A DNA stretch of 64,000 nt from Podarcis bocagei (taxonomy: Eukaryota). The notes below the pieces were generated by a model. It was given only the letters and a program-made list of their open reading frames with translations, searched no databases and was not told the DNA's origin. Location of the stretch: NCBI GenBank assembly GCA_964188305.1, contig OZ076895.1. The stretch is one strand, 5' to 3'. Positions 455-44,532 of this stretch are shown one piece after another (position 1 is the first letter of the stretch; each line of letters opens with the position of its first letter). A program made the translations under genes and the position numbers.

Positions 455-669
455 TACAATTAAGAAGAAGTATATTAATAGTGAAATAATTATTAAGCTC
501 CAACTTAACATTTTGGAAATGTGCACCCAGTTTTTTTGGGGGGGCCAAGAGAGTGGGGCCTTAGGCTATAGCTTGTTTGGCTTATACGTAAATCCGGCAC
601 TGGGACTTCTCACTATCCTCTTGAAAAGCGCAAACTCGGTAACTGGAAAATGCATTAAGAACAAAACTA

Positions 670-1210
670 AGCGCCCGGCGCTCTTGCCTTGCCGAAGGTT
701 TTCCGGCCCCTTCCGGCCCGCGCTGGAAATCACGGGCATCGCCGACACTTTCTGGAGCAATGTGGGGGCGGCCGCCCGGTGCTCCTGCCCTGGACGGACA
801 TCTCCCCGCTTTGCCCCGGCTCCGGCTCCTCCCTCGCGCCCCCTTCTCGCTCGGTAAACGCAGTAGCAGACGCCGGCCCCGACCGCCAGCCCCGCCACCA
901 GCCCCGTCACCGACGACCCTCCGCGCTCCCTCATGGTCACGTCTCTCTCGGCCCCTCAGAGATCCGCCGGGAGGAAGCGGCCATCAGCGACATGGCTCCG
1001 CCTCCCTCGCTCCGCGGCCTGGAAGAGAAACGGCGCCTCGGCGCCCCCTTGCGCGCGCGGCGCCCTCCGCATCCAGACCTCCGCGCGCAGGAAGCGCGCT
1101 GGGGAGATCTGGCGCCGGCCCCCCTCCCCGAGTTTTTTATTTTACCGCCCACTGCCGCCTCAGAAGTAGGCGAAGCAACGGAATCCCGAGTAAAACATCC
1201 ACTCGCTTTC
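670..1210. promoter_or_regulatory. CpG island / ARMC10 promoter and exon 1
   Basis: Very GC- and CpG-rich stretch covering the exon and upstream region, with GCGC-rich NRF1-like sites at about 1050-1100. Confidence 0.75.
688..934 (-). CDS. ARMC10: ARMC10 (armadillo repeat-containing 10) coding exon 1
   Basis: MRERGGSSVTGLVAGLAVGAGVCYCVYRARRGR matches the ARMC10/ARMCX N-terminal membrane anchor (xAGLxxGAGACYCIYRL). It is head-to-head with FBXL13 as in mammals. The likely phase-1 donor is CAAG|GCAAGA at 688/687. Confidence 0.88.
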
Positions 1211-6181: not shown

Positions 6182-7228
6182 ATGAGTGGTCCACCGAAAA
6201 CAAGAGCTGCGTCGAAAGCAGGAAAAGGCCAATTAGTACAAACAACTCTGATTTCCCAGGCTCGCAGATCTTCAGTCCCTGCTGTTTTACAGGGAGCTGT
6301 ACCCTCAACAACAGCTCCATCTAAGGAAGCTGAACAGCCAACAACTGAGGATATGGCAGCAGGGGGATCTGGAACTCTTTTAGAGGAAATGCTACAACAA
6401 TTTGCAATTTTGAACAAAAAGGTTGACGATCAAACTGCTAAAATTGACCTAGCTACATCCTCAATTACTAAACTTTCTGAACAGGTGGCTAAGCACTCAC
6501 AAGATATTGGGAGTTTAAAGGACGCTACATCTGAAAATCGGAAATTGGCCGAGGCTGCGAATGAAAAAGCAGGCCAAGCAATTCAGAAAGCGGATGAATT
6601 GAAAGGAGAAGTAAGGCCGCTTTACAAACACGTCAGCGACCAGCAGGCCTACCTGTCTATGGTGGAACTGAGAAACAGGGAAAATAATTTGAGATTACGC
6701 TCTATCCCAGAGATTGAGAAAGAGGATTTGACTGGCTTTTTGACAGCAGAATTTTCTAAATTCTGGGGTATAGAAGAAGATACAGATTTTAAAATAACAA
6801 CTGCATTCAGACTGGGAAGAGTTGCCAGGAAGGACAGGCCTAGAGACTGTTTGATCATCTTAAGGACCAAGCAAGAGAGAGACAAACTACTTGACCTACA
6901 TTTTAATAAAGCACTTGAGATCCAGGACAGAAGAGCTCAAATTTACAAGGATATCCCTAAACAACTACTGGATCTCAGATCAAACTACACTGAACTAGCT
7001 GGGCTTTTGAGAAGCAACGGAATACCCTACAGGTGGGAGTTTCCACAAGGCCTATCATTCAACTACACAGGAAAGAAGATTAAAATCAAAACGAAAGAGG
7101 ATAGCCAGAAGTTTCTGCACGACCACGGAGAAGACCTGCAGAAGGGAACAGCAGGTCCTTGGCCTCCACCTGAGTCTGGGAAAGTGCCAGCACCCTCGGA
7201 TTTAGACAAGAAAGAAGACACCCCATAA
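6182..7228 (+). CDS. L1 ORF1p (coiled coil, RRM, CTD), 348 aa, intact
   Basis: Heptad-rich N-terminal half followed by ELRNRENNLRLRSIPE, AFRLG..RPRDCLI, IYKDIP and YRWEFP motifs typical of L1 ORF1p. Confidence 0.92.
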   Translation: MSGPPKTRAASKAGKGQLVQTTLISQARRSSVPAVLQGAVPSTTAPSKEAEQPTTEDMAAGGSGTLLEEMLQQFAILNKKVDDQTAKIDLATSSITKLSEQVAKHSQDIGSLKDATSENRKLAEAANEKAGQAIQKADELKGEVRPLYKHVSDQQAYLSMVELRNRENNLRLRSIPEIEKEDLTGFLTAEFSKFWGIEEDTDFKITTAFRLGRVARKDRPRDCLIILRTKQERDKLLDLHFNKALEIQDRRAQIYKDIPKQLLDLRSNYTELAGLLRSNGIPYRWEFPQGLSFNYTGKKIKIKTKEDSQKFLHDHGEDLQKGTAGPWPPPESGKVPAPSDLDKKEDTP

Positions 7229-7252
7229 AGAGCAACAACAGATTAATACAGG

Positions 7253-10200
7253 ATGTCTCTACAGCTGTATAGTTGGAACATTAATGGCGCGAATTCCCCG
7301 GAAAAACGCAAAAGGATTTTTCATATTTTGAAGAAGGAACATTTGGATATAATCTGTCTGCAAGAAACCCACGTGACCAGGCTTCACAGGAAAGTGTTAA
7401 TAAACAAAAGACTAGGCCAAGAATTTATCTCATCAGACAGAGTTAAAAAGAGAGGAGTGGTGATCTATGCAAAAGAGAACTTATCACCAAAATTCTTGTT
7501 TAAAGATGAACAAGGAAGAATCCTGGCAATTGAAATACAAATCCAAGGAGAAAAAGTCTTGATATTAGGAATTTACGCACCAAATGAGGGGAAATCAGAA
7601 TTCTACAAGAAGCTTCATGAGACATTACTGGATTATCTGGACTATTCTAACATCATTATGATGGGAGACATGAATGGGGTGGTCTCTACCTATATGGATA
7701 AGTCACAGAACCAGAACCTGACCAAAGATGGAAGACTACCAAAGACTTTTTTCGAACTAACTGACAATATGGATTTGATTGATCTATGGAGGACGAGAAA
7801 CCCCCTAGGTAAAGAAGGAACTTTCTTTTCTGAGGCCCATCTGTCATGGACAAGAATCGACCAAATTTGGACAACTAGAGGTCTGGCACCTAAGACCACA
7901 AGAGTAGAAATCTGCCCAAAGACATGCTCCGACCATAACGCTATGAAAATAGAAATGAGATTTACTACTGCCGATTCCTTCAGATGGAAAATGAATGACA
8001 ACCTGCTAAGAGATCAAGAGATTGTAAAGAAGGCCCAAAAAACTTTAAAGGACTACTTTGAAATTAACCTCAACACCTCGGTGGAAAAAAGAATAATCTG
8101 GGACGCAAGTAAAGCTGTTATGAGAGGGTTTCTGATACAACAAAATACGATCAAGAAAAAACTTTGGAATGGGAAAAAGGATAAGATATTAGAGAAGATA
8201 ACAGCCGGAGAGAAAAAATTAAGACTGAATCCAAAATCAAAAGAGACTTTAAGAGAAATTAAATTTCACCAGTCACAATATATGAAACTGATCAACCAAG
8301 AAGTGGAATAGAAAATTAAACAAATGAACCAAAGATCTTTTGAATCTGCGAATAAATGTGGGAAGCTGTTAGCTTGGCAGTTGAAAAAGAGACAAAAATT
8401 AAACTATGTTACCAATCTAGAAGTGGAAGGAAAAAATATTCAGAAACCAGGAGAAATTAGAAAGTGCTTCCAGAAATATTTCAAAAAACTGTACACCCAA
8501 GGGCCTGAGGAAGTGACTGAGATAGAACAATTTCTGAAAGATAATGGCCTACCAGAATTATCTCAAGAGAAGAGATCAATCTTGAATTGTAAAATAACAC
8601 AACAGGAAATTGAGGTTGCCATACAGAACATGCAGTTAGGCAAATCCCCAGGCCCTGATGGACTTACCTCCAAGTACTACAGGATGTTAAAGGACTACTT
8701 GACACAACCATTAGTGGAGGTTTGCAACCAGATTATGGGGGGAGGGAGGGCACCAGATACGTGGAAAGAAGCATTCATCACTTTGATACCTAAAGTGGAA
8801 ACTGAAAAGACTCAACTCAAGAATTACCGTCCCATCTCACTCCTGAATGTGGATTACAAAATATTTGCAGACATTTTGGCAAATAGATTTAAAAAGGTTT
8901 TAAATGAAGTAATTCATAAGGACCAAGCAGGCTTCCTCCCTGGTAGACATTTGTTTGATAACACCAGGAACATTATTGATATTCTGGAACTTTTACAAAC
9001 AAACATCAACACTAAAGCAGTGTTAATTTTTATTGATGCGGAGAAAGCCTTTGACAATATTTCTTGGAAATTTATGAAGAGAAACTTGGAAGGGATGGGA
9101 GTGGGAAGGGGGTTTGAGAACGGAATAGAAGCAATCTATTCCGAACAAAAAGCTAAGTTGATAGTGAACAATGTGGTGACAGAAGAACTTCAGATTGAAA
9201 AAGGAACACGTCAGGGGTGCCCCCTGTCCCCTTTATTGTTTATTTCAGTCCTGGAGGTTTTGCTGAACATGATAAGGAAGGATCGGCAGGTACAAGGAAT
9301 ACGGGTCGGAGTGAAACAATATAAACTGAAAGCATTTGCAGATGACTTGGTTTTAACATTACAGGAGCCAGAATCTAGTACAAAAAGAGTTCTAGAACTG
9401 ATACAGAAATTTGGTCGGGTGGCGGGTTTCAAGTTGAACAAACAAAAAACTAAGGTGTTAGGGAAAAATTTGACAGCTACTGAAACAGAAGAGTTTCAGA
9501 AGGAAACAGAACTAAACATTGTTAAAAAAGTGAAATACCTGGGGGTCAATCTCTCTTCCAAGAACTTGAACCTATTTAAAGATAATTACGAGAAATGTTG
9601 GTTAGAAGTTAAAAAAGATTTAGAAATTTGGTCAAGACTGAAGTTATCCTTGTTAGGCCGAATTGCAGCTATAAAAATGAACGTTTTGCCAAAGATGTTG
9701 TTTTTGTTTCAGGCCTTACAGATTGTGGACAGAGTGGAATGTTTTGGAAAGTGGCAGAAGGATATCTCTAAATTTGTCTGGCAGGGCAAAAAGCCCCGAA
9801 TAAAGTTTAAAATACTAACTGATGCAAAGGAGAGAGGGGGATTTGCCCTGCCGGACTTAAGGATATATTACGAAGCTGCAGCCTTCTGCTGGATGAGAGA
9901 TTGGATTTTGTTGGAAAACACTGATGTCCTGGATCTGGAAGGCTTTAATAACTCGTTAGGTTGGCATGCGTATTTGTGGTATGACAAGGCAAAAACACAT
10001 GGAATGTTTAAAAACCATATTGTCAGGAGAGCAATATTTATGGTCTGGAAAAAATACAAAGACTTATTAGAAAGCAAAACTCCGAGGTGGGTATCACCAA
10101 TAGAGGCCAAGGCTCGGAAAAAACCCAATATGGAGGCCGGATGGCCGAAATATTGGGAAATAATAGAGAACATCGGAGACAACTGGAGGTTGCAGAGCTT

Positions 10201-10993
10201 TGAAAGGTTAAAGGGTAAGGTGCAAGATTGGTTTCACTATGCCCAAATCAATGAGGTTTTTAAGCTAGATAAAAAAACAGGATTCCAGGTGGAAAAATCG
10301 AAACTTGAGACAGAATTGTTAGAACCAAAGACCAAGCTATTATCGAGAATGTATAACTTGCTGCTTAAATGGAACACTCAGGACGAGACAGTTAAATCAG
10401 CCATGATAAAATGGGCTCAGGACATTGGTTATAACATCATGTCTGAGGACTGGGAAAGGTTATGGACCACCGGTATGAAGTTTACGGCATGTAATGCCTT
10501 GAAAGAAAACATTATGAAAATGGTATACAGGTGGTACATGACCCCAGTCAAGCTTGCTAAGATTTACCATTTGTCCGATAATAAATGCTGGAAATGTAAG
10601 GAGGCTGAAGGGACATTCTTTCACCTCTGGTGGACCTGCCCAAGAGTGAAGGCCTTCTGGGAAATGATATATAACGAGTTAAAAAAGGTGTTTAAATACA
10701 CTTTCCCTAAGAAACCGGAGGCATTCCTCCTGGGCATTGTCGGCCAGAAGGTGTCAAAGAAGGATAGAACTCTTTTCATGTACGCTACTACTGCAGCAAG
10801 GATTCTTATCGCTAAGCATTGGAAGACTCAAGATTTGCCCACACTGGAGGACTGGCAGACGCAACTGATGAACTACATGGAACTAGCCGAGATGACTGCA
10901 AGGATCCAAGATCTGGGAGAAGAAGCTATGGAGGAGGATTGGAAAAAATTTAAGGACTATTTGCAAAAGTACTATAAGTTATATGAATCTTAA
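7253..10993 (+). CDS. L1 ORF2p (APE endonuclease, reverse transcriptase, CCHC), interrupted by one in-frame TAG at 8309-8311
   Basis: EN motifs SWNING, LQETH, IYAPN, GDMN, RIDQI and SDH. RT motifs YRPISLLN, DAEKAFD, GTRQGCPLSP and FADD. C-terminal CWKC...HLWWTC. ORFs 7253-8311 and 8324-10993 are in the same frame. Confidence 0.95.
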
Positions 10994-13146: not shown

Positions 13147-13780
13147 GTTGCTTCCATAGTCATATTAGTCCCTAAGGTTTCTTAAGAAAGGTCTCTCTGT
13201 AACTGTCTGAGGCCTAGTTCGAGGTTCTGAAAAATAAAAATATCCCATGTAGCTCTTTGTTTCCCTGTAGGCTCTGCATACCTCCTGCCAGAAGGGGATG
13301 GCCCAGGAAAAAATAACGGTAATGTCTATTTCCAAATATATGTTCAGTGTATATAAGAAAGTCCCCCAAGCAGTTCTAATTGCTAGGCTTCTCTTCTTTT
13401 CCATTTAGATGACATAGTCCTAGAAGACCTGGAGGGAGAGCAGGGGCCCATTTTCTGTGAGCAGCAGGACAGCTCTGGAAGAAGATGGTGGAAGAGCTCC
13501 TCCGTCAGAGGAGCTCAAGAAATGCCCAAGAAAACATGAAGACAATGTCTATTTCCAAGGATATGTTCAGTGTATATAAGAAAGTCTCTAAAACACCTAG
13601 TCAATGTCTTCCCTGCTAGGGTGAGAAGCGCCGCATTTCCATTATGCTAATTATTTCTAAACTTGCATGTGTGCATTGAAATTAGCATATGCAAATCTGT
13701 CCCCCCATTTGGCCACCCTGATATCCTCTCTTCTTTCTCTTCCAATAAAAAATTCAGAAACAATTAGCCTAAGCCAAATA

Positions 13781-14109
13781 AAGTGGTGCCTCGCAAGACG
13801 AAAATAATCCGTTCCGCGATTCTCTTCATCTAGCGGTTTTTTCGTCTGGCGAAGCAACCCTATTAGTGGATTAGAGCTATTAGCGGTTTAGCGGCTATTA
13901 AAGGCTTAGCGGCTAAAAGGCTATTAGCGGCTTAGCGGCTTAGAAAAAGGGGGGGAAGCGGAAAAAATCGCAAGACTCGCAAGACGTTTTCGTCTTGCAA
14001 AGCAAGCCCATAGGGAAATTCGTCTTGCAAAGCGCATTGAAAAACGGAAAACCCTTTCGTCTAGCGGGTTTTTCGTCTTGCGAGGCATTCGTCTTGCGGG
14101 GCACCACTG
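13781..14109. mobile_element. Tigger/pogo-like MITE (family B)
   Basis: TIRs AGTGGTGCCTCGCAAGACG / CGTCTTGCGGGGCACCACTG, TA flanks and internal TTAGCGGC repeats. Confidence 0.8.
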
Positions 14110-14454
14110 TAATGGCAGTAGGGATGACAATTTAGGTAAACCACTTTCCTCTCATGAGATCCTTCATAGTAAAGGTTCAGGGTGAGGGGCCATGAAACTC
14201 CTTGGAACTTGCGGGAGGGCTATACCTCGGTGGTAGGCGGTCTGATTGACATACAGAAAGCGGACTGATGTAGAAGGGATGGAGCAGTTGCCCCTTCTCA
14301 AGTGGGCTGCAAGAGGAAGGATGCTCCCTCCAACCAGCATAGAAACGCAGCTCTCCACCTCTCAACTGCCAGCCCCTGACACGTTAGTAAGACTTTTTGC
14401 AGGCTAGTATCTTTTGTGGGTTATTTCATGAAAAATCCTCTCATTTTCCTTTCA

Positions 14455-16965
14455 TTAGAGGATTTTTCATAAAAGAAAATGCCCATCAAAGGAAAATAAA
14501 AGAAAGGAAATCTGGGAAGAAATACAAAGAAATGAAAAAGAATTACTTAATAAACCAGACAATGAAAACATTAAACAATATAAAAATCCTTCAAACACAA
14601 TTCTCAGTGGTAATAAATGAAGAGCTGGAATGGAAGATCAAATGGCTAAAATAAAAACATTTTTAATTCGGAAATAAGCCGGGCAAACTCTTGGCCTGGC
14701 AACTAAAGAAAAAAATGAGATGAAAGATTAATAAAATCAGAATGGATGATAAATGGTCTGATGATCCAAAGGAAATCAGTAGATGTTTTGCCAATTACTA
14801 CAGAGTTACACAAAGAGGGGTCCGAAAAAAGTGAAAAAAATGCAGAATATTTGAAGACGAATGGACTGCCTAAGATCTCAAAAGAGAAATCCAGGATATT
14901 AAACTCTCCCATTGCCCCTTTAGAGGTACAAGCAATTCAAAGAGCAAAAATATTATCAATTTTAAAATTTAAAAAATGATAAAAAGAAAGGAGGTGCGAC
15001 GGAGATTTCAAAATTTGAATCCGACCTGGTAAACTCTAAGACCAAAACTCTTTATAAAACATACAGACTCCTCCTTGACTGGGAAGTCAAGGAAGAGGAG
15101 GTCAAATCAGCAATGATTAAATGGACTCAAGCCTTTGGCCACAACATAGACATGAGCCAATGGGAACACCTATGGAAAGTTAATTGGAAATTTGCAGCAT
15201 ATTTTACGCTAAGGGAAAACCTCCAAAAGATGCTATATTGATGGTATTTAACCCCCTGTAAACTTTCCAAAATGTACAAAAATGTTCCAAATACATGCTG
15301 GAGATGTGGAGAACCAGGTGGAACTCTCTTCCACATATGGTGGGTGTGTAAAAAGTTTAAGACCTTTTGGAATGATATATAGAGAGAGCTCAAAACAATG
15401 TTAAATGTATCCTTACTGAAGAAACCAGAATCATTTTTATTGGGCATTACAGGTCCAGACATTGTTAGGAAGATAAAAGTCTTTCTGTATGCCACCATTG
15501 CCGCAAGGGTATTTATAGCAAAACATTGGAAGAGTGACAAAATTCCTACTAAATCTGAACGGTTACTAAAGCTGGTAGAATATGCTGAATTAGACAGTCT
15601 CTCAGAAAAGATCAAAGATAAGTCAAAACAGGAGTTCATTTCAAACTGGGAACTTCTAAGGAGATATTTGAAGGATAATTGTTGCAATCTGAAATCATTA
15701 GCAGCCTTTGAGTAATCTCTGTGAGTAATACAGATTAAAAGGGAGAAAACAGATTTACACCGTATTTTTCGCCCCATAAGACGCACCGGCCCATAAGACG
15801 CACCTAGATTTTAGGGGGGGAAATAAAGGAAAAAAAATGTATTTCCCCCCCAGGTGCGCTGCACTAATCCAGAAGCTTGGGGCAAGCTGAGGTCAGCGCG
15901 CCCCAAGCTTCTGCGTGCCGGCAAGCAGTCCGCTGCCGCCCCAAGCCTCCCGCACCCGGCAGGAGGTCCCGCTGGGTGCGCAAGGCTTGGGGCGGCAGCG
16001 GACTGCTTGCGCGCACCTAGAAGCTTGGGGCGTGCTGAGCTCAGCACGCCCCAAGCTTCTGCATGCCGGCAAGCAGTCCGCTGCTGCCCCAAGCCTCCCG
16101 CACCCGGCAGGAGGTCCCGCCGGGTGCGCAAGGCTTGGGGCGGCAGCGGACTGCTTGCGCGCACCGAGAAGCTTGGGGCCAGCTGAGCTCAGCACGCCCC
16201 AAGCTTCTGCATGCCGGCAAGCAGTCCGCTGCCGCCCCAAGCCTCCCGCACCCGGCAGGAGGTCCCGCTGGGTGCGCAAGGCTTGGGGCGGCAGCGGACT
16301 GCTTGCGCGCACCGAGAAGCTTGGGGCCAGCTGAGCTCAGCCCGCCCCAAGCTTCTAGGTGCGCGCAAGCAGTCCGCTGCCGCCCCAAGCCTCGCGCACC
16401 CAGCGGGACCTCCTGCCGGGTGCGGGAGGCTTGGGGCGGCAGCGGACTGCTTGCGCGCACCGAGAAGCTTGGGGCGGGCTGAGCTCAGCTGGCCCCAAGC
16501 TTCTCGGTGCGCGCAAGCAGTCCGCTGCCGCCCCAAGCCTCGCGCACCCGGTGGGACCTCCTGCCGGGTGCGCGAGGCTTGCAGACACTCGCCCGAAGCA
16601 GGGGGAGCCCTCCAGAGGGCTCCCCGTGCTTCGGGCGACAGGCTGCCGCCCCAAGCCTCGCGCACCCGGTCGGACCTCCTGCCGGGCGCGTGAGGCTTGC
16701 AGGCATTCGCCCCATAAGACGCACCCCGATTTCCCCTTCATTTTTGGAGGGGAAAAAGTGCGTCTTATGGGGCGAAAAATACGGTATATAGGTTTATCAG
16801 AGTGGAAAAATTGGGAAAGGATGGGAAGTCAATCTTATGTACTAAATATATTATAGAAGGACTTGTACTTTTTTATTTTTATTTTTGACAAAACTGACAC
16901 GTAAAATAAGGAAGATATGTCTTTGATGTAGATGCAAGTATGAACAAAAAAGCAATTTTTTTAAA
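14455..16965 (+). mobile_element. Degraded L1: ORF2 linker and C-terminus with the RT domain deleted, plus 3'UTR interrupted by a MITE
   Basis: IRGFFIKEN...EELEWKIKW...GKLLAWQLKK aligns with the intact L1. It then jumps at about 14945 to KSAMIKW...CWRC..HIWWVC..KKPESFLLG (stop 15715). Stops and frameshifts are present. Confidence 0.88.
15760..16784. mobile_element. Tc2-like (TcMar) non-autonomous element with 148-bp hairpin-repeat interior
   Basis: TIRs CCGTATTTTTCGCCCCATAAGACGCAC at both ends, TA at the right flank and CA at the left. The internal repeat has period 148. Confidence 0.85.
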
Positions 16966-18177
16966 AAACCCTTACAGGTTATTCACAACGCTGTGTTCGT
17001 ATTTGGTTCAATTGTCATTGGTGTTGGTGACTGACTTTCCCCATTGCTGGTTGCTATGCAGGCTTGAGGCCATCTTTTGGCAGATCTGCCTTCATGCTGT
17101 CATTTTCCAGCACTACCCTCCTTCTGTCACTTGGTTCCTCGAACGTTGGGGACAGCAAGCACAACCATGAACCGCAGAACCTGAACACGGAGTTTGCCCT
17201 CTCTACGAATGCTGGGCAGAGCTCAACCATGGAACCGACCTCGCCATTTCCCCAATGAGCGTGTCTCTCTCTTTGGGGCTCAAGGGAGCATATTAGCCCA
17301 GCTTCACCATGCTCTGGGATACAGCACTCATGTTAAGGCAACCCTCTGAGAAACAGCTTTTTGGTCATGAACTTCACCTAACAGCTTGGACTGTCCTGAG
17401 AGGAAAGCATTAAAAAAAACGCAAGTCGTACAAGGGGACGTACTTGTGAGTTAACCCCCTTTCATTCCATGTTCTTCAATGGGCTTTACATGTGCATGCT
17501 ACACCTTTAAAGTACATTCTTTCCCCCAAAGAATTCTGGGCACTGTAGTTTATTCCTCAGAGTTGCCATTCCCAGCAACACTTAACAAACTGCAGTGCCC
17601 AGAATTCTTTAAGGAAAGAATGTGCCTTGGCGGTTGGACTAGATGACCCTTGGGGTCCCTTCCAACTCTACAATTCAGTGATTCCATAAATGCATATGGA
17701 GCCATGTATTGGTGTGCACTGAATGTTAGTCACACTTTGGTTCTGTTGAAATCAGTCACAGCTAAGTCCCATTGATTTATGAAAGTGTGGCTAATTTGTC
17801 TAAGAGATTGATAACCCCAATAAATTACTTTGTTCTTAGATCAGGGCGTATAAGACTTCCTGCAAACTGTGTACAGAAAAGTGACCAACTCAAGCCAAAG
17901 CCGGAATGCATCTTTTTCTGCAGTTTGTTCAGCATGCTGCACTCTGGGCAAACAACACAGCACACCAGGCTAACTTTAGTGAGCCTAACAGGACTGCAGC
18001 TCAGATAAATGAATGGTTTCCCACAAGCATTGAAGGTAAAGTGACAATGCCCCCCTTTAGCACCAGGACTTTTGAGATGTCAGCTAAACAGACTGCAGGA
18101 CACCTCCTTTCAGGAACCAAGGTTGATAAGAAGCACATGGGGAGACACTGCAAGAAAAGGGAACAGCTGCTCTCACG

Positions 18178-18356
18178 GTAGGAACATGAGAAGCTGCCGA
18201 GTCAGACCACTGGTCCATCTAACTCAGTATTGTCTGCACTGGTCGGCAGCCCCTTTCTAGGCAGTTCTAGGCAGGATTCTCTCCCACCTGGAGATGTCAG
18301 GGGTTGAACCTGGGAGTTTCCGTATGCAAGCAGATGCTGTACTTACTACTGACCTT
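18178..18356 (-). mobile_element. tRNA-derived squamate SINE (Squam2-like), degraded
   Basis: Minus strand has a tRNA-like head (AGCATCTGCTTGCAT...CCCAGGTTCAACCCC) and a 3' end TGGACCAGTGGTCTGACTCGGCAGCTTCTCATGTTCCTA. Confidence 0.7.
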
Positions 18357-18441
18357 TCCTTTTTATTATTTGAAATATTTATATAACCAGGTTCTTGGAC
18401 AGCTTACAACAAGGAAAGGAACACATGAAAACTTACATATA

Positions 18442-18933
18442 CAGTCGTACCTTGGATGTCGAATGGCTTAGTTGCCGAACACTTCGGCTCTCAAACGTCA
18501 AAAACCTGGAAGAAGAAGAGTTTGGATTTGATGTCCTGCTTTATCACTACCTAAGGAGTCTCAAAGTGGCCAATAATCTCTTTTCCCTTCCTCCCCCACA
18601 ACAAACACTCTGTGAGGTGAGTGGGGCTGAGATACTTCAGAGAAGTGTGACTGGCTCAAGGTCACCCAGCAGCTGCATGTGGAGGAGCGGGGAATTGAAC
18701 CCGGATCACCAGATTACGAGTCTACCGCTCTTAACCACTACACCACACTGGCTTTCCGGAAATGAGTGTTCCAGTTTTCGAACGTTTTTTGGAAGCCAAA
18801 CGTCCAGTGCAGCTTCTGCTTGAGTGCAGGAAGCTCCTACAGCCAATCAGAAGCCGCACCTTGGTTTTCAAACAGTTCCAGGAGACAAACGGACTCCCAG
18901 AACGGATTAAGTTTGACAACCAAGGTACGACTA
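18442..18933. mobile_element. Tigger-like MITE interrupted by a SINE
   Basis: TA|CAGTCGTACCTTGG ... CCAAGGTACGACT termini. Confidence 0.75.
18511..18753 (-). mobile_element. CORE-type tRNA SINE (Squam3-like), full length
   Basis: Minus strand: AGCCAGTGTGGTGTAGTGGTTAAGAGC (A box), GGTTCAATTCC (B box), GGGTGACCTTGAGCCAGTCAC core and (CTT)n tail. Confidence 0.85.
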
Positions 18934-19706
18934 ATAAAGAAAGCATATATGTATCTACCCCTTTCCCGTAACAAATAAATTGATTGTATTTTCCTTTTTA
19001 CAGCAGGTTAAGAGAATGCCCTATTCAAAACCATTTTCTTCCTTTTAAAATTTTAGACCACCCTTAGATCTCAGGGTAGTACCTGGATTAGCAGTTCCTC
19101 CTTCTGTTAACCCAGTTATATAAATATAACGGCTACCTACCTGAATATAAATATAACATTTTATAATTTTTGTCTAGAAGTGAAGGCTGCTAATGAACAT
19201 CTTTCCCATTTCCACTTTCCATATGTGACTGACTTTCATTAATCATCCCCACCCTGTTCTATAAAAATAATTAAATTTAAGTTACATCAGTGTCAGCATT
19301 TATAAAATGAAGTTGAATAAATAATAATAATTTCTTTTCAATTTTTACAGGTTCAGCTTTGTTTATAGGAAGACTTACAAATGCTACAGAGTAAACTTGT
19401 CCTATCCATGCTTCCATATATCTGCATTCCTAAAAAAATTAAAAAAAAAACATTAATAGGACATTTTAAGTCTTGTCTCTATCAAGAAGAAGTTGTGTGA
19501 AACTTATGGCTGTAAATAAAAAGAGATGCTTATTGCCATTTCTGTGGTGGTTCTGTTCTGTTATAGCAGTTATAGACTTCTGAAAAATGCCTTAGGGCTC
19601 CTGCGTTCGAATCCTACTTGTGGTTTTCCCACAGTCATTTGGTTCGCCGCTGTGAGAACAGGATGCTAGAGTACATGGTCCGTTGGTCTGATCCAAAAAG
19701 CTCTTC

Positions 19707-19855
19707 AACAGCTTAGCTCAGTTGGTTAGAGCACAGTGCTGATAACGCCAAGGTGGCAGGTTTGATCCCCATATGGAACAGCCATATATTTCTGCCTTGC
19801 AGGGGGTTGGACTAGATAACCATGGGATCCCTTCCATTTCTACAATTCTGATTCA
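19707..19855 (+). mobile_element. tRNA-Ile-derived SINE with CR1-type 3' tail
   Basis: TTAGCTCAGTTGGTTAGAGC...TGCTGATAACGCCAAGG..GGTTTGATCCCC head followed by the CR1 3' end GGGGGTTGGACTAGAT...CCCTTCCA..TCTACAATTCT. Confidence 0.75.
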
Positions 19856-20259
19856 TTGCTGCATCTGTACATGTTGCACCTCCACTTATTGTGAGGTATT
19901 TCAATGGAAAGAGTTATACCAGGACTGTTCTCACCTGGTAGCTTCATTATAAACCTTAAGGTATGAAGTTGAAGGAAGAAAGGTCCTTTCAACCAACTTC
20001 AGATGATATATGCTAGTTTCCATAAGGGCATTTCTACCCAAAGTACCTACCAGGGAAATAAAAGGATCTGGAAAAGTTAACCTCGCTCAGAGTTGCCAAG
20101 GCTGCATCACTCGGGCTGATAATAGTATTTTGTATCCATCTCTTAATAAACAACACAACAGGATGTCCTTTCAACCAACTTCAGATGACAGAGAGGAGTT
20201 AAGTTTGAACCATTTATTTACACACTTTTGACTTTCCTAAATTTAAGCAGGAGTGTTAA

Positions 20260-21480
20260 GTCTAAGATCTGCTCGGCCAGGTGGAGGAGTCTGGCTCTCC
20301 GGAGCCCGCCGTGACCCGGGAGGGCGGCTGTCTGGGAGGAAAGTGAGCCGGAGGGAAGGACGGGGCGCAGGCCGGGCGGGAAGTTCTTGAGAACCGGCCC
20401 TTTGTGGAATCGTCTGCGCCTGGCCCCTGGCAGATCCAGGGAATTAGGCTTGCCCTGTCCGAAAAGGGGGTGAGGAGACTGAGGAAAGCGAGCAAAACTC
20501 AGCGCGCCAGGCAGGAGAGAAGCATCGGAGCCGCAGAGCCAAGCATAATGAGAGCGGAGCTTCCCAAAACATTTGTCACTTCGCCTTCCCAAGCTGTGCA
20601 AGACAGCGCAGAGCACGGGAGACTCTCGAGCTCAGGGCTGCGGGTCGAGCTGCAAGCGATTCTTTGCATTGCTAGGGGTTGGACTAGATGACCCTCGCGT
20701 CCCCCTTCCCGCTCTACAATGAAAAAAACGGGGGGGGGGCAGCCTTTGCCCAGGCCTTCTCCACGCAAATCCAAAGCCCACGAAGAAGGCGCGCTGCGGC
20801 CTAGATGCTGAAGAAGACGCAAACTCGGCAGGCGCAACTCGGCCCGCTGCCACCGACCAGAGGCTAAGAGAGGCGGCGGCGCACGAGGTCGGCTGGCAGC
20901 CCTCGGTGACTGGGCTGCCGCGCGTGGGTTGTGAGGCGAGCTGCCCGCTCATGGAGGGGACGTGGGGCCTTCCTTCAGCCGCTGGCCGTTGGCGAGCTGA
21001 GGCGAATGTTCTCCCTCCCGCCCGCGTCCCAGAGGCGGCCGTTGGCCAGAGAGCGCGCGCTGACCGCGTGACGGCCTGTCCAGGGGGCAGTGGTAGGTCG
21101 GTCGCTAGGCAACCGCCAAGCGGTCACTGCCGGGGTCCGGAGAGCGGCCGCTGGACGGAGCGCGTGTCTGGAGGGCCCCTTTCCGACCATGGAGGCGATT
21201 AAGACCACGGCCGTGTTTCAGAGCGTGGACCCCTCGCTTAGGGCCTATTTCAAGAAACACTCCATACCCGACATCTATGAGGTAAAGGCCCCGCTGAAGG
21301 GCCGTTGGGTCACAGTGGCGGTGAACACGGGTGTGCGTGTGAATGGGGGTTTGCGGGGGGACTGGCCCTCTGCCTCCTGCTCTGCTCTGAATTACTCACT
21401 CACCTCTGGTCCCGTTAGACGCTAGTGATACTCCCTGTCTCATCCCGTCTTTCTAGTCGACCTGAGTTTCGGTGCACACG
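20260..21480. promoter_or_regulatory. CpG island / FBXL13 promoter
   Basis: GC- and CpG-rich block spanning exon 1. It contains an RFX X-box-like site GTCGCTAGGCAAC at 21101-21113. Confidence 0.75.
21189..21281 (+). CDS. FBXL13: FBXL13 (DRC6) coding exon 1
   Basis: MEAIKTTAVFQSVDPSLRAYFKKHSIPDIYE with ACCATGG Kozak and GAG|GTAAAG donor. Similar to the long-form FBXL13 N-terminus (LRSYF...IPQICE). Confidence 0.85.
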
Positions 21481-40394: not shown

Positions 40395-40798
40395 TTAACC
40401 TATTACAGTGACAATAACCCCATGTTTCTTTCCTGTTTGAACTGGATATTCTTTGTGCTTTTCCCATTCTTCATCGTCGGTATCCTGTTCAAATGTTTCT
40501 GGGTAAATAGGAAGCTTATCTTTGGGACACTCTTCATAATAGCTTCTGACATATTTCCCAACAAACCAGCCTTTGAATTCCTCAGGTTTTCTACATTCTA
40601 AACCATGGTAGTGAACACTGTAGTGGTGCTTCAACCAGTAGAAAAGATAATGAATGTTGTAGTCACATCTCCAAGGATTTTCTCTAAGCCACAGTATTTT
40701 CAAAAAGTACAAATCTTCTAATACTCCGTATTCGAAATTTTGCAGGGAGTTGTTTGATAAATCCAATTCTTCCAGGTTCATGAGTCCTGCAAATGCAG
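40395..40798 (-). CDS. LRRC17: LRRC17 last coding exon
   Basis: AAFAGLMNLEELDLSNNSLQNFEYGVLEDLYFLKILWLRENPWRCDYNIHYLFYWLKHHY...VIVTVIG*, with acceptor ttttgaacag. Confidence 0.95.
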
Positions 40799-41278
40799 CT
40801 GTTCAAAAAATGTAAACACTAGGATTACATATCTACTGCGTAGAAATAACAACAACCATAGAGTTATGTGTTAGTACCATTAAACCTTGGCTGAGATTCA
40901 CTGTGGTTGTGTTTTAAAGAAACAAGAGAGGCACAATGTTCTGAACATTATTGTGAGTCTTCTGTACCAGACCCATCATAGAGATTAACAGTGTAATCCC
41001 ATACAAATTTATCTAGGAGTAAGTTGTATTGAATTCAGTGGGCTTGCTTCTAAGAAGACATGCATAATATTGCACTGTAAAACAATCTGATTAATCAGTG
41101 ACTGTTGTTGCTTCCCGTAGGTGGAATTCTCTTAGATTTGATAGATATTCAACTTGTATTTATTACTATTTCATAATTATTAAAAATGACATTTTGAGGA
41201 AATGAGCCACCTTTTGTATCATGAAAGCATTTATTAAAACTCACTATAGTTTGATATATCATAATAAAGTTTACTCAC

Positions 41279-41434
41279 CTGGGTCTATGTGAACTATTCC
41301 ATTACTACTGAGGTTTAATACCTTCAGGTCATTCATGTCTTCAAATTCCTTGGGTCGTAGCTGGTTGATTTTATTGTTAGATAGATCAAGTTTAACTACA
41401 TCTGGAGGGATGTTACCGGGAACTTTCTTTAATT
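41279..41434 (-). CDS. LRRC17: LRRC17 middle coding exon
   Basis: ELKKVPGNIPPDVVKLDLSNNKINQLRPKEFEDMNDLKVLNLSSNGIVHIDP|gtgagt, phase 1 to 1. Confidence 0.95.
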
Positions 41435-42521
41435 CTTGAGAAGGAAAGAAGAAATATATATATACATATATATTATGGAAAGCCGTAGTCCCCGCCACTA
41501 CATAGTTTCCCATCTATCCATATAACAACATAGACTACTCATGTGCATTCTTAAGTCTTCTTTTGTTTTTAAGACAGCTTTTAAAAGTTATTGTCTTCTA
41601 TTTATACCCCACCTTTCTTCCATTATGGAATCCCAGGTAGCATACATGTGGTTCCTACATGGTCTCTCATCCAACACTGACCAGACTCAGACCTACTTAG
41701 CTTCAGTAAGGTGGTAGCCTGGTGTGCATATCCTATTCCCAAATACATTGCCCATTACTCCTTTAGTTTGTGTATCACCAACTTCAGAGAATTAATGTAC
41801 CCACTGAGAGTTTGAAACAAAGTAAACCAACTGACGTGCTAAAGAAACCATCTTAAAAATCTACAAGTAGTACAGATTGTGCCAAAAAGTGTCCTTTCCC
41901 TGTTGTAGACAATGTAGAGCATTGTTTTCTGGCTGCCTTATTGAATTAATTTTTATGAAGAATGATGCTATTGATTCACCAATTCACATATTGTCTTTCT
42001 GTCAAAACAACATTGAGAAGTTTGTCTTCCTCTGCACTTTGTGGCTTGGGTCACTTTTTAAAACTCATCTGGTGCTATTTATTTAGATAGCTTGTGTAGT
42101 TGTCAGGTGTGGGGGTTGCAGTTTGACAGGTTGGTGGATGAATGGTCTTTTAGAGCAGGAGTTTGAATGTGGATAACATTTTGTTGCCTTCCAGATATTA
42201 TTCCCTGATTTCTATTGTTTTTAAATTTGTCTAGGCAGGGAACCTAGGGGTGTACAAACATCCCTAAATCCAATCTAAAATTAATTCAAACTTTCATCTA
42301 GTATTTTACATTCTGCTACCATTGGTTTAATTTGCACAAATCTTTTTTCCATTTAATCTGCTAATGCCAATATATGAATATTTTAAACATTTTTATTTAT
42401 CATTGTACATGATAGACATGCATGTCTCAGGTATCAGCAAATATTTGCAAATCAGTTACTTTCCCTGTGTGTTTCTTTTCGAAGTTAATGAATCTAGAAA
42501 GACAGCGTGCAGAAACAAATA

Positions 42522-42739
42522 CAGTGGTATCTCGGGTTACATACGCTTCAGGTTACAGACTCCGCTAACCCAGAAATAGTACCTCGGGTTAAGAACTTTG
42601 CGTCAGGATGAGAACAGAAATCGTGCTCCGGTGGCAGCAGGAGGCCCCATTAGCTAAAGTGGTGCTTCAGGTTAAGAACAGTTTCAGGTTAAGAACGGAC
42701 CTCCGGAATGAATTAAGTACTTAACCCAAGGTACCACTG
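42522..42739. mobile_element. Tigger/pogo-like MITE (family A)
   Basis: Same TIRs and TA TSD, with small internal deletions. Confidence 0.88.
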
Positions 42740-43775
42740 TATCTTGCGGCAATTTAAAGACCAAGTTAATTAAATGACTAATAGCCCATCATAAAGACAT
42801 CTCTGGCTGCAGTTCTAACCCTGTCTACTAAGAGGCAAGTCCCATTGAATTAAAAAATGGGGGAAATGATCTCTTGAGCCAAATGTTAATCCCATGAGCC
42901 ATACCTCTGGCCAGAGGTTCTCTACCCCTGTTTCAGGGAATGGGTAGTAGCCAAAAAGTAGCAGTTGAATTCAGTTGGTTCTTCCTGCTTTACTAAAGAG
43001 CTTTGGAATGTAACTGAGGAGTACAGATAAAGTCTACAGGTAACAAAAGAGATAACTTCTTTCCATTTGAAAATAGCAATAATGAACAATGCAGTTCATT
43101 GGTTTTTAAAATTCAAGTAGAAACAAATTAAGGCCTCAATCCTAATTCCACTTACTTGGAGCCCATCATTGAATACAATGAGGTTTATTTCTGAGTAGAC
43201 ATGGGTCAGTTACAAGACATGGGGCTTGAAAGATAAATTACTCTAAATTATTTTTATTATAAATTAATTTCCTTGTAGTCATGGGTGGTAAGTAGATGCA
43301 GGCTTCTCCTATATGATGGCACAATTTGTTTGATTAAATCACTAATATTTTAATGCTAAATGTATTATAGGGCTACATGCTCATCCTACTTCCAGGCTGC
43401 TTGCATCTGACACACTTAAGGCACATATGCCTACTTTTGTTATTTTGTAATCAGGATGCTATAAGTTTTTATCAGTCTATTGATTGAAGTCTATTGATTG
43501 TTATGGATAATAATAATAGTGGATAATGGATAGGTGAAAAATTCCACCGCTTGGGCTAGATAACCACCAACTGTAATCTTCTGCATGTCTACTGACAAGT
43601 AATTCTTTGAATTCAATTTGGCTTACTCTCAGGTAACAGTCAGAAGGCTTACAGCCTAAAATATTTTTTAAAATACACCGCACCTTTCCATTACCTTGGG
43701 TGAAGTTTCATAATGATAACTTTAATTGTCATTAATGAGCAGCTAAAAAGTAACATGTATTTGGCTTATACAGAC

Positions 43776-44532
43776 CTTTTTTTCTGCAGTCCAGTGTCCG
43801 TACAGGAAACATGTAAATGTGGCAGAGAGAAGAGTCAAATTCAGGTCTGATGGGTTTAGGTTTTGGAATAGGAGGGTCTGGTCTTTCTCCTTCAATGCAC
43901 AGCTGCTCTGAGTTTACTTGCTTGAGCTTTTGACCTTTTAGTTTTGTTGGGTGTACACATTTAGCATAATTTCCCAAGTTCCTGTTTCTTGGAAGCTGCA
44001 GCATCGTTATAAGGGTTTCGATCTGACAGTTGCAGTCCCATGGATTATCATACAGGCGTAAATAAATTAAAAGAGGCATGTAAATAAACACCTCCTCAGA
44101 CAGGATTTTCAACTTATTGTGCTGCAGTAAAAGCGTAGTGAGTTTATTTAAACCAAAAAAAGCTTCATCCTCAATTTTTGATATCTCATTCTGTTGTAAA
44201 TCTAGACTTTTTAATTTTGTGAACTTGGAAAACATGTTGTTCTTCAGCTTGCGAATTCTATTTCTTGCTAGGAGCATGTGTTTTAAATCTTCTGGCCAAT
44301 CAGACAATACAAATGTCAGTTTCCTTTCTTGGCAATCTAAGTATTTGTCATGAAGATAGGTGTACACATCACATGGGGGGCCTGGGGTGTAGCGCTTGAC
44401 GGTGCCAGATGCTCTTCTTAAGCCGTTTGACTTTCCATTATTTGCTTTGTTTCTTGAACTTCCATTTCTTGTCTTCCTAAAGTCAGCTGCTTTACAAAAG
44501 AAAAGTAGTATTATAATTGTAACCACTTGCAT
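43776..44532 (-). CDS. LRRC17: LRRC17 first coding exon (signal peptide, LRRNT, LRRs, LRRCT); exon acceptor at 44670
   Basis: MQVVTIIILLFFCKAADFRK...PCDVYTYLHDKYLDCQERKL...LRLYDNPWDCNC...LDCRKK, donor AAG|GTCTGT. The three exons total 1317 nt, giving 438 aa. Confidence 0.95.

Follow-up and report, generated by a model that had tools for sequence, protein, structure and literature searches.

The segment between positions 13300 and 20270 of the window, the 64,000-nucleotide stretch of Podarcis bocagei DNA analyzed here, is with high confidence a non-processed pseudogene of SERPINE3, that is, a DNA-level, inter-chromosomal copy of approximately basal Lacertini age that has since decayed. SERPINE3 is an eye-associated protease-inhibitor gene that has been lost repeatedly in mammals with reduced vision. 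In related lizards SERPINE3 is still intact where it normally lies, so that the lizard element does not record a gene loss but is a duplicated pseudogene of an ordinary kind.

The proposal in an earlier note on this DNA that the remnants derive from SERPINE3 was borne out by the names of protein matches, by tblastn identity and by a DNA-level match to the SERPINE3 locus. A phmmer search of 1.84 billion proteins with a 51-amino-acid piece of the second coding exon returned 14 matches, including serpin E3 proteins at E-values down to 1.7e-10. Ten of these were looked up, covering every match above 56% identity, and serpin E3 was the only name among them, in fragments from Gekko, Varanus, Thamnophis and Apteryx; the rest were unnamed "hypothetical protein" records (Naja, Gekko kuhli, Acipenser) or nameless Logan fragments. 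For Naja, a full-length serpin E3 is also on record (P0122). In tblastn searches with squamate SERPINE3 proteins, the top identity was to Podarcis muralis (81–84% for most pieces, lower across the lesions; 38–87% for the other proteins). Since the exon pieces are 80–84% identical to the P. muralis protein and about 2.2 kb of DNA can be aligned to the P. muralis SERPINE3 locus at approximately 90% identity, a chance resemblance is excluded. The Pfam Serpin profile (PF00079) matched the 17840–18035 piece over profile positions 96–141 with an E-value of 6.7e-4 and a sub-threshold score of 19.4 bits (cut-off 27); the other exon pieces had no Pfam match, and phmmer with the best exon piece found no serpin among PDB sequences. 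The generic profiles are weak because the pieces are too short, and the identity is settled by the large phmmer search. The choice of SERPINE3 over SERPINE1, SERPINE2 or SERPINI is based on the names of the matches looked up and on tblastn.

Three exon remnants are present on the + strand. The first coding exon remnant (17062–17332), which contains an ATG at 17094 and the signal peptide, is 89% identical to positions 10001–10259 of the P. muralis SERPINE3 locus (L003), and its protein pieces are 81–84% identical to P. muralis SERPINE3. The second (17840–18035) is 92% identical to L003 11178–11414 and has both splice sites intact, with the donor GT at 18036–18037. The last coding exon (19351–19394), which encodes GSALFIGRLTNATE followed by a TAA stop, is 80–87% identical to squamate SERPINE3 C-termini and starts at the same Gly codon as that of the parent. 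The TAA at 19392–19394 is not a lesion, because Lacerta and Zootoca have the same state. The AG acceptors noted before (17060–17061, 17838–17839 and 19349–19350) are at the acceptor positions of the parent, and the three retained acceptors, like the two donor sites, are in exact register with L003.

The lesions described in the earlier note were all recovered, and alignment to L003 gave their exact extents. In the first coding exon remnant, 4 bp are lost after 17198 (reported at about 17202) and 16 bp after 17271, each shifting the frame, and the donor is destroyed by a change of GT to TT at 17333–17334 (CATG/TTAAGG). In the second, a CAA codon has become a TAA stop at 17851–17853 and a deletion of 41 bp after 17902 again shifts the frame. 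The middle exons are indeed missing: L003 11700–18996, with coding exons 3–7, is absent and replaced by window 18289–18957. Because gap-free contigs of species labels A (same species label, independent sample) and B and E (two other species labels) span the lesions, these are not assembly errors, and the copy is present in several related species. Altogether, five of the eight coding exons are gone, including the reactive-centre loop, the absent exons being those that encode residues ~153 to 387 by tblastn. No complete serpin fold with a reactive-centre loop exists in an open frame, and the copy cannot encode a serpin. What it retains is the start codon, the signal peptide, the splice acceptors, the stop and the polyadenylation signal, the last being the AATAAA at 19515–19520 that had been noted previously.

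The copy is non-processed, because its colinearity with the P. muralis locus over 13300–20270 includes introns and flanks, and the same colinearity is found with the other lacertid SERPINE3 loci (L004, Lacerta agilis; L005, L007 and L008). The inferred DNA-level origin of an intron-containing copy was thus confirmed by colinear introns and flanks and by splice sites at the positions of the parent; the lesions, and an intact parent elsewhere as seen in congeners, complete the picture of a duplicated pseudogene. The upstream flank (13300–14423, + strand) is colinear with L003 5705–9888 at 84–95% identity, and likewise with L004, L005, L007 and L008, and is compressed by deletions relative to the parent. 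It is followed by a later transposon insertion in intron 1 (14424–16976, + strand) at a point where the parent is uninterrupted (L003 9884–9888); this insertion consists of a 5'-truncated LINE-like ORF2 tail and a 148-bp tandem repeat (15871–16581) and is bordered by a 7-bp duplication, GGTTATT. The intron 2 remnant (17333–17839, + strand), colinear with the introns of L004 and L005 up to 17793, is approximately 0.6–1.5 kb shorter than the intron of the parent genes and contains an interspersed repeat at ~17484–17750, where read depth is very high. The 5' part of intron 3 (18036–18288, + strand) is kept, colinear with L003 up to 11700, and gives way to repeat-derived filler (18289–18957), a SINE nested in another repeat, with no match to the parent introns. 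These 670 bp of repeats occupy the place of 7.3 kb in the parent, in which exons 3–7 were located by tblastn at L003 11812–18561; contig depth in three species labels ranges from thousands to ~2 million over 18374–18996, compared with ~500–1,100 in the 18285–18373 bin. Homology resumes with the 3' part of the last intron (18958–19350, + strand; L003 18996–19371) and continues through the 3' UTR with the AATAAA and the copied downstream flank (19395–20270, + strand; L003 19416–19818 and 20345–20611), stopping at about 20267. No poly(A) tract was found downstream of the AATAAA.

An intact SERPINE3 gene of 402 amino acids is annotated in P. muralis, P. raffonei, P. lilfordi, Lacerta agilis and Zootoca vivipara, in one conserved place near one end of a chromosome of 118–125 Mb. 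The expected neighbours of SERPINE3 are on the FAM124A/INTS6 side, and neither INTS6 nor FAM124A was seen within 10 kb of the lacertid parent genes. In Naja, the SERPINE3 locus is overlapped by a guanylate-cyclase gene. The copy has different neighbours, namely LRRC17, nested in an F-box/LRR gene, and a first exon that we tentatively take to be that of ARMC10, called from this one exon and its likeness to the human N-terminus; Pfam found nothing in the presumed ARMC10 and F-box/LRR N-terminal exons. Of the off-synteny location proposed earlier, the LRRC17/F-box-LRR part is shown by the analysis, and the ARMC10 part is putative. On one side of the copy lies the 5' end of ARMC10 and on the other the start of LRRC17's host, the F-box/LRR gene, the two being 20 kb apart; this placement comes from this assembly alone, as the public contigs are too short to reach unique flanks. 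In P. muralis, where LRRC17 is nested within an F-box/LRR gene of 858 amino acids, LRRC17 is on OZ076963.1 (78 Mb) and SERPINE3 on OZ076956.1 (122.5 Mb) of the same assembly. The size classes are alike in P. raffonei, Lacerta and Zootoca, with the LRRC17/F-box-LRR neighbourhood on a chromosome of 70–79 Mb. Gene order around SERPINE3 is conserved between human and zebrafish (PMC9355568).

The age of the copy can be estimated from 1434 non-coding, non-repeat sites, at which it differs from the parent genes by 0.096–0.107, whereas parents from different genera differ by 0.080–0.101 (values from window-anchored projections). Because the copy-parent divergence (~0.10) equals the divergence between lacertid genera, we infer an origin of the copy near the base of Lacertini, at about the time of the basal radiation of the tribe, which has been dated to ~38 Ma with a range of 15–47 Ma (PMC6733905). 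With support of 100/98, the parent genes of Podarcis group together to the exclusion of the window copy, a grouping which implies that the copy coexisted with the parent throughout the history of Podarcis. DNA trees of four, five and six sequences, comprising the copy, the genera and the Lacerta and Zootoca fragments described below, are star-like and give no order among them. Codon changes number 38 on the lineage of the copy versus 6–11 on each parent lineage. The ratio of nonsynonymous to synonymous changes on the copy's lineage, 22:13, differs significantly neither from neutrality (p = 0.07) nor from the parents (p = 0.49), and neither these counts nor the pairwise dN/dS of 0.44 can tell neutral from constrained evolution. 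Since the tests on this ratio are not significant, the case for relaxed constraint is based on the lesions and the raised count of changes rather than on dN/dS, and these suggest that the copy has been decaying without detectable constraint since its origin.

On the favoured explanation, a genomic segment of ~15 kb was copied at the DNA level, taking in the gene with its introns and extending ~4 kb upstream and ~1.2 kb downstream of it. The copy now sits between ARMC10 and the F-box/LRR gene, on a chromosome other than that of the intact SERPINE3. Its decay comprises the three frameshifting deletions, the premature stop, the destroyed splice donor, a 7.3-kb deletion, now filled by repeats, that removed coding exons 3–7 with the reactive-centre loop, and the insertion of a LINE into intron 1.

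Three other explanations of the element have to be weighed against duplication followed by decay. If the only SERPINE3 of the species had moved to this site and then been lost, the remnant would be a unitary pseudogene and a visually oriented lizard would lack SERPINE3, as the earlier note had entertained. The signals that the copy keeps are those of a once complete gene, and the parent was read in congeners (three Podarcis species) rather than in the window's own species, which leaves this reading some room. It is contradicted, however, by the intact gene that five lacertids, including those three, keep at one conserved position; furthermore, the distance between the copy and the Podarcis parents is of the size seen between genera, the copy falls outside the clade of these parents, and label E has a parent-type exon, with sequence absent from the window copy, beside the window copy. 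We regard a unitary pseudogene as extremely unlikely, and the alternative put forward earlier, a relocated DNA-level duplicate, stands, given the intact parents on another chromosome in related lizards. That the element is a processed pseudogene, or that it derives from a different serpin clade, for example SERPINE1, has a practically negligible probability. Taken alone, the Pfam result is a weak generic Serpin match, and ARMC10, FBXL13 and SERPINE1 are all located at human 7q22, which speaks for SERPINE1; but every named close match is serpin E3, the non-coding DNA is ~90% identical to the SERPINE3 locus, and this reading is refuted by the homology of the introns and both flanks, with no poly(A) tract after the AATAAA. 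Finally, the remnant might still have a use, for example if it yields a non-coding RNA, serves the F-box/LRR gene as upstream promoter or exon, or gives rise to a short secreted peptide from the ATG at 17094. The copied promoter-proximal flank, the signal-peptide exon and the polyadenylation signal survive, a 54-codon open reading frame starts at 17094, and the G+C-rich region at the start of the F-box/LRR gene begins ~0.9 kb beyond the end of the element. Against such use, no RNA reads covered the three exons in the single run examined (label E, 12% sampled, tissue unstated), in which the signal was confined to repeats and a handful of ambiguous reads at 19353–19441; moreover, the 2.5-kb LINE insertion parts the copied flank from the exon, and the exons change at or above the non-coding rate. 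Residual use is very unlikely on these grounds.

A further possibility refines the explanation as a direct duplicate and does not replace it. A first duplicate may have been inverted beside SERPINE3 and gained the 16-bp deletion there, the window element being its secondary inter-chromosomal copy or relocation; to this two-step origin via an older partial duplicate we assign a probability slightly short of even. In Lacerta agilis, an exon-plus-intron fragment lying 2.5 kb past the SERPINE3 stop, on the minus strand (L004 24371–24910), has a 16-bp deletion at exactly the position of that in the window and borders on the upstream element, copied in inverted orientation. Window 13167–13301 matches only such downstream inverted copies (L003 24688–24863, L004 25873–26048, L008 22714–22889) and not the upstream flank of the parents, and inverted fragments are located downstream of the gene in Zootoca and P. 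raffonei too. In addition, contigs of labels A, B and E reveal a further exon copy, ~8% different and gapless over the site of the 41-bp deletion. On the other hand, the star-like substitution trees do not pair the window copy with the Lacerta fragment, the distance between these two (0.176) is the largest in the set, and the Lacerta fragment has neither the 4-bp deletion nor the donor change. TTT is found on both sides of the 16-bp deletion, so that its recurrence is possible in principle. In this comparison the ARMC10-to-F-box/LRR interval was read in the window only. More tentatively, and at a probability that we would place below even, the SERPINE3 locus may have been a duplication hotspot that shed partial copies just before the rapid radiation of Lacertini, the window element being a copy of a copy. 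The members of this family would be the fragments beside the gene, some inverted and some direct, the window copy and at least one more copy that likewise lacks the 41-bp stretch.

Duplication followed by decay also fits what is known of comparable elements. Relative to the lacertid parent, the copy is alike in the signal peptide, the helix and strand segments, the C-terminal motif and the retained exon boundaries, with introns and flanks ~90% identical in DNA, and unlike it in lacking five of eight coding exons, in its frameshifts, stop and dead donor, and in its location on another chromosome. As in classical segmental-duplication pseudogenes, there are introns and flanks, a functional parent elsewhere, progressive decay, transposon insertions and an internal deletion; there is no essential difference from these, the notable features being an inter-chromosomal location and a parent locus surrounded by several sister fragments. 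The copy shares with processed pseudogenes the status of a dead copy at an unrelated locus but, unlike them, has introns and flanks copied from both the promoter side and the downstream side, and lacks a poly(A) tail. SERPINE3 pseudogenes have been described in poorly sighted mammals (Indrischek et al. 2022, PMC9355568), with frameshifts, stops, splice-site changes and exon deletions in the same gene. Those are single orthologs that decayed in place within a conserved gene order, with loss of function, whereas the lizard element is additional to the gene, which congeners retain intact, and occupies a foreign site.

The main value of these results is that of a correction: the data do not show a sharp-sighted lizard losing the eye-associated SERPINE3, and the element is a pseudogene without evident functional consequence. 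Screens for loss of SERPINE3 in squamates should expect the window copy and its sister fragments as decoys. The element also represents a cleanly dated inter-chromosomal segmental duplication in lizards, and shared indels might mark the poorly resolved base of Lacertini. If the SERPINE3 locus was indeed a duplication hotspot at that time, the 16-bp and 41-bp indels would count as rare genomic changes of possible help in ordering the unresolved basal splits of Lacertini.

On the + strand, three stretches of the window can be read as serpin exons if frame shifts are allowed. The first (17062-17332), preceded by an AG acceptor, contains an ATG at 17094 and a signal-peptide-like start, followed by typical N-terminal serpin segments spread over three different frames. 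The second (17840-18035) is preceded by AG, ends in an intact GT donor and carries a TAA at 17851-53; the third (19351-19394), also preceded by AG, encodes a 14-residue serpin C-terminus and a stop, and a polyadenylation signal, AATAAA, lies at 19515-20 (+). Generic tools detect little of these remnants: Pfam returned one sub-threshold Serpin match (19.4 bits, E 6.7e-4) to profile positions 96-141, the part of the fold expected for the exon piece, and a PDB sequence search with the exon piece found no serpin. The 51-residue piece 17885-18037 was run through phmmer against the whole of a set of 1.84 billion representative proteins; it gave 14 matches (E down to 1.7e-10), the serpin-like ones with 46-67% identity. 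Ten of the 14 were looked up by name: every one that carries a name is a serpin E3 (Gekko, Varanus, Thamnophis and Apteryx), those from Naja, Gekko kuhli and Acipenser are unnamed 'hypothetical protein' records, and three others are nameless Logan fragments. A word search that started from full-length Gekko serpin E3 produced a list of 120 proteins, of which almost all carry the name serpin E3 or a synonym; among them is a 402-aa Podarcis muralis protein whose 90% cluster also includes P. raffonei, P. lilfordi, Lacerta agilis and Zootoca vivipara. With six squamate SERPINE3 proteins as tblastn queries on the window, most exon pieces were nearest to P. muralis SERPINE3 (81-84%, lower across lesions); the gecko, anole, snake, teiid and anguid proteins matched at 38-87%. 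The named phmmer matches and the tblastn ranking uphold the SERPINE3 identity proposed in the earlier note.

Five SERPINE3 loci were fetched with 10 kb on each side, from P. muralis (L003), L. agilis (L004), Z. vivipara (L005), P. raffonei (L007) and P. lilfordi (L008). Window 13300-20270 aligns colinearly by blastn with L003 5705-20611. On the 5' side the matching parts are the upstream flank, the final part of intron 1, the first two coding exons with intron 2 between them, and the beginning of intron 3; on the 3' side they are the final part of the last intron, the last exon with its 3' UTR, and ~1.2 kb of flank downstream. Because introns and flanks were copied, the window copy is not a retrocopy, and that reading of the element is ruled out. 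Alignment against the parent gene defined the lesions, all on the + strand: deletions of 4 bp (after 17198), 16 bp (after 17271) and 41 bp (after 17902), a donor changed from GT to TT at 17333-34 and a CAA to TAA change at 17851. The copy lacks the parent's coding exons 3-7 (L003 11812-18561, residues ~153 to 387) and with them the reactive-centre loop; 670 bp of highly repeated sequence (18289-18957) stands in place of L003 11700-18996. Sequence and parent alignment thus bear out every particular previously claimed for the exon remnants, AG acceptors, lesions and AATAAA. The TAA stop in the last exon of the window copy is also present in Lacerta and Zootoca; in the Podarcis parent genes it has been changed to TGA.

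Intron 1 of the copy holds a 2.55-kb LINE-like insertion (14424-16976) with a 7-bp duplication on its flanks. To this insertion belongs a G+C-rich tandem repeat at 15871-16581 (148-bp unit, 4.8 copies, 93% matches) that reads without stops in several frames of both strands; short sequences similar to it occur inside parent-locus introns (L003 12769-13140). tRNA-derived SINE copies lie at 19690-19800, assigned from tRNA-like sequence alone, and at 18509-18753, where contigs from public runs under three species labels reach an extremely high depth.

The surroundings of the copy belong to a different chromosome from that of the parent. A complete three-exon LRRC17 (40395-44532, -) is nested in an FBXL13-like F-box/LRR gene of the opposite strand. 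The P. muralis annotation shows this nesting too, and human FBXL13 has the same arrangement; candidate N-terminal exons of the host gene are predicted at ~21.2, 27.1 and 31.1 kb (+). The large exon of LRRC17 is 99% identical to that of P. muralis, and longer blocks around it show 94-99% identity; the encoded protein differs from both the P. muralis and P. raffonei versions. Together these comparisons mark the window as DNA of a wall lizard other than those two. On the other side of the copy, a first exon at 566-940 (-), in which Pfam found no match, is presumably that of ARMC10. Between it and the pseudogene lies a nearly full-length LINE-1-like element (6182-10993, +) whose ORF1 has 348 aa and whose ORF2 is broken into frames of 352 aa (endonuclease side) and 889 aa (reverse-transcriptase side). 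In P. muralis, LRRC17 is at 6.58-6.61 Mb of OZ076963.1 (78 Mb), inside an 858-aa F-box/LRR gene of the opposite strand, and SERPINE3 is on OZ076956.1 (122.5 Mb) of the same assembly. Wherever the gene was read in a lacertid, SERPINE3 sits 5-8 Mb from an end of a chromosome of 118-125 Mb, and LRRC17 is on one of 70-79 Mb. Colinear introns and flanks, together with these separate chromosomes, establish the DNA-level relocation that had been suggested. Among the SERPINE3 loci, that of P. raffonei has a 141-aa CD225-family (PF04505) gene called within an intron (L007 15478-15903, -). That of Naja naja is overlapped on the opposite strand by a 994-aa gene model of the soluble guanylate-cyclase type (L002 1-27111, -; domains HNOB, HNOBA and Guanylate_cyc), in keeping with the mammalian GUCY1B2-SERPINE3 neighbourhood.

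Logan contigs from three public runs, with species labels A (an independent sample under the best-matching label), B and E, were placed on 16950-19600. Over both deletions of exon 1, the donor, the TAA, the 41-bp deletion and the junction of repeat and intron, they show 0-3 differences and zero gaps; the lesions are real and common to several species labels. At 17902, one label E contig has an additional 36 letters, which agree with the parent sequence at that spot, and therefore a parent-type exon coexists with the window copy. With this exon, and with a 402-aa SERPINE3 in P. muralis and its cluster members in four other lacertids, the earlier note's other alternative, a relocated and lost ortholog, is very probably wrong. 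Another set of contigs (labels A, B and E; window 17818-18062) aligns gap-free with the window across the site of the 41-bp deletion and differs from it at ~8% of positions, which points to at least one more, putatively paralogous, SERPINE3 pseudo-copy. In one RNA-seq run (label E, 12% read, tissue unspecified), depth was zero over exons 1 and 2, and the last exon had a few ambiguous reads with letters also present in the parent; these data hint that the copy is silent.

The five parent loci were projected onto window coordinates and, after removal of exons and repeat-rich stretches, 1434 sites were left; a four-taxon version of the comparison was also run. Divergence at these sites is 0.096-0.107 between the window copy and the parents, compared with 0.080-0.101 for parents of different genera and 0.029-0.061 among the Podarcis parents. 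The ML tree groups the three Podarcis parents in a clade (support 100/98) and leaves the window copy outside it, at a base where its order relative to Lacerta and Zootoca does not resolve. A published study places Podarcis as the sister group of the remaining Lacertini and dates the Lacertini crown, with its very short basal branches, to 37.6 Ma (estimates 15 to 47 Ma) (PMC6733905). Taken with the divergences and the tree, these dates would place the duplication at about the base of Lacertini. On the lineage of the window copy 38 of ~145 comparable codons have changed, versus 6-11 on each parent lineage; its N:S split of 22:13 is compatible with neutrality and with the parents' ratio alike, and therefore decides nothing.

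All the lacertids examined have, in the 10 kb downstream of the intact gene, partial copies of SERPINE3 exons and flanks, inverted or direct, in a pattern that varies by species. Exon 8 and downstream flank are repeated directly in P. muralis (L003 27796-29410, +) and P. lilfordi (L008 24848-25951, +); inverted copies comprise the last exon region in P. raffonei (L007 28162-29770, -), an intron-2 fragment in Zootoca (L005 32212-32581, -) and, in L. agilis, a fragment of the first coding exon plus intron (L004 24371-24910, -, 2.5 kb downstream of the SERPINE3 stop), within an inverted stretch given overall as L004 24371-25088 (-). Window 13167-13301 matches only such inverted downstream copies and not the parents' upstream flank, which suggests that the element descended from an older local duplicate beside SERPINE3. 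The Lacerta fragment also has a 16-bp deletion exactly at the position of that in the window copy; however, this deletion has a 3-bp repeat on its flanks, and substitution trees do not join the two sequences. The fragment lacks the 4-bp deletion, and its donor change is unlike that of the window copy. On balance, we consider descent through a local duplicate a serious possibility, at slightly below an even chance. The window element itself is an old inter-chromosomal, non-processed SERPINE3 pseudogene, a fresh example of a well-known type of genomic fossil.
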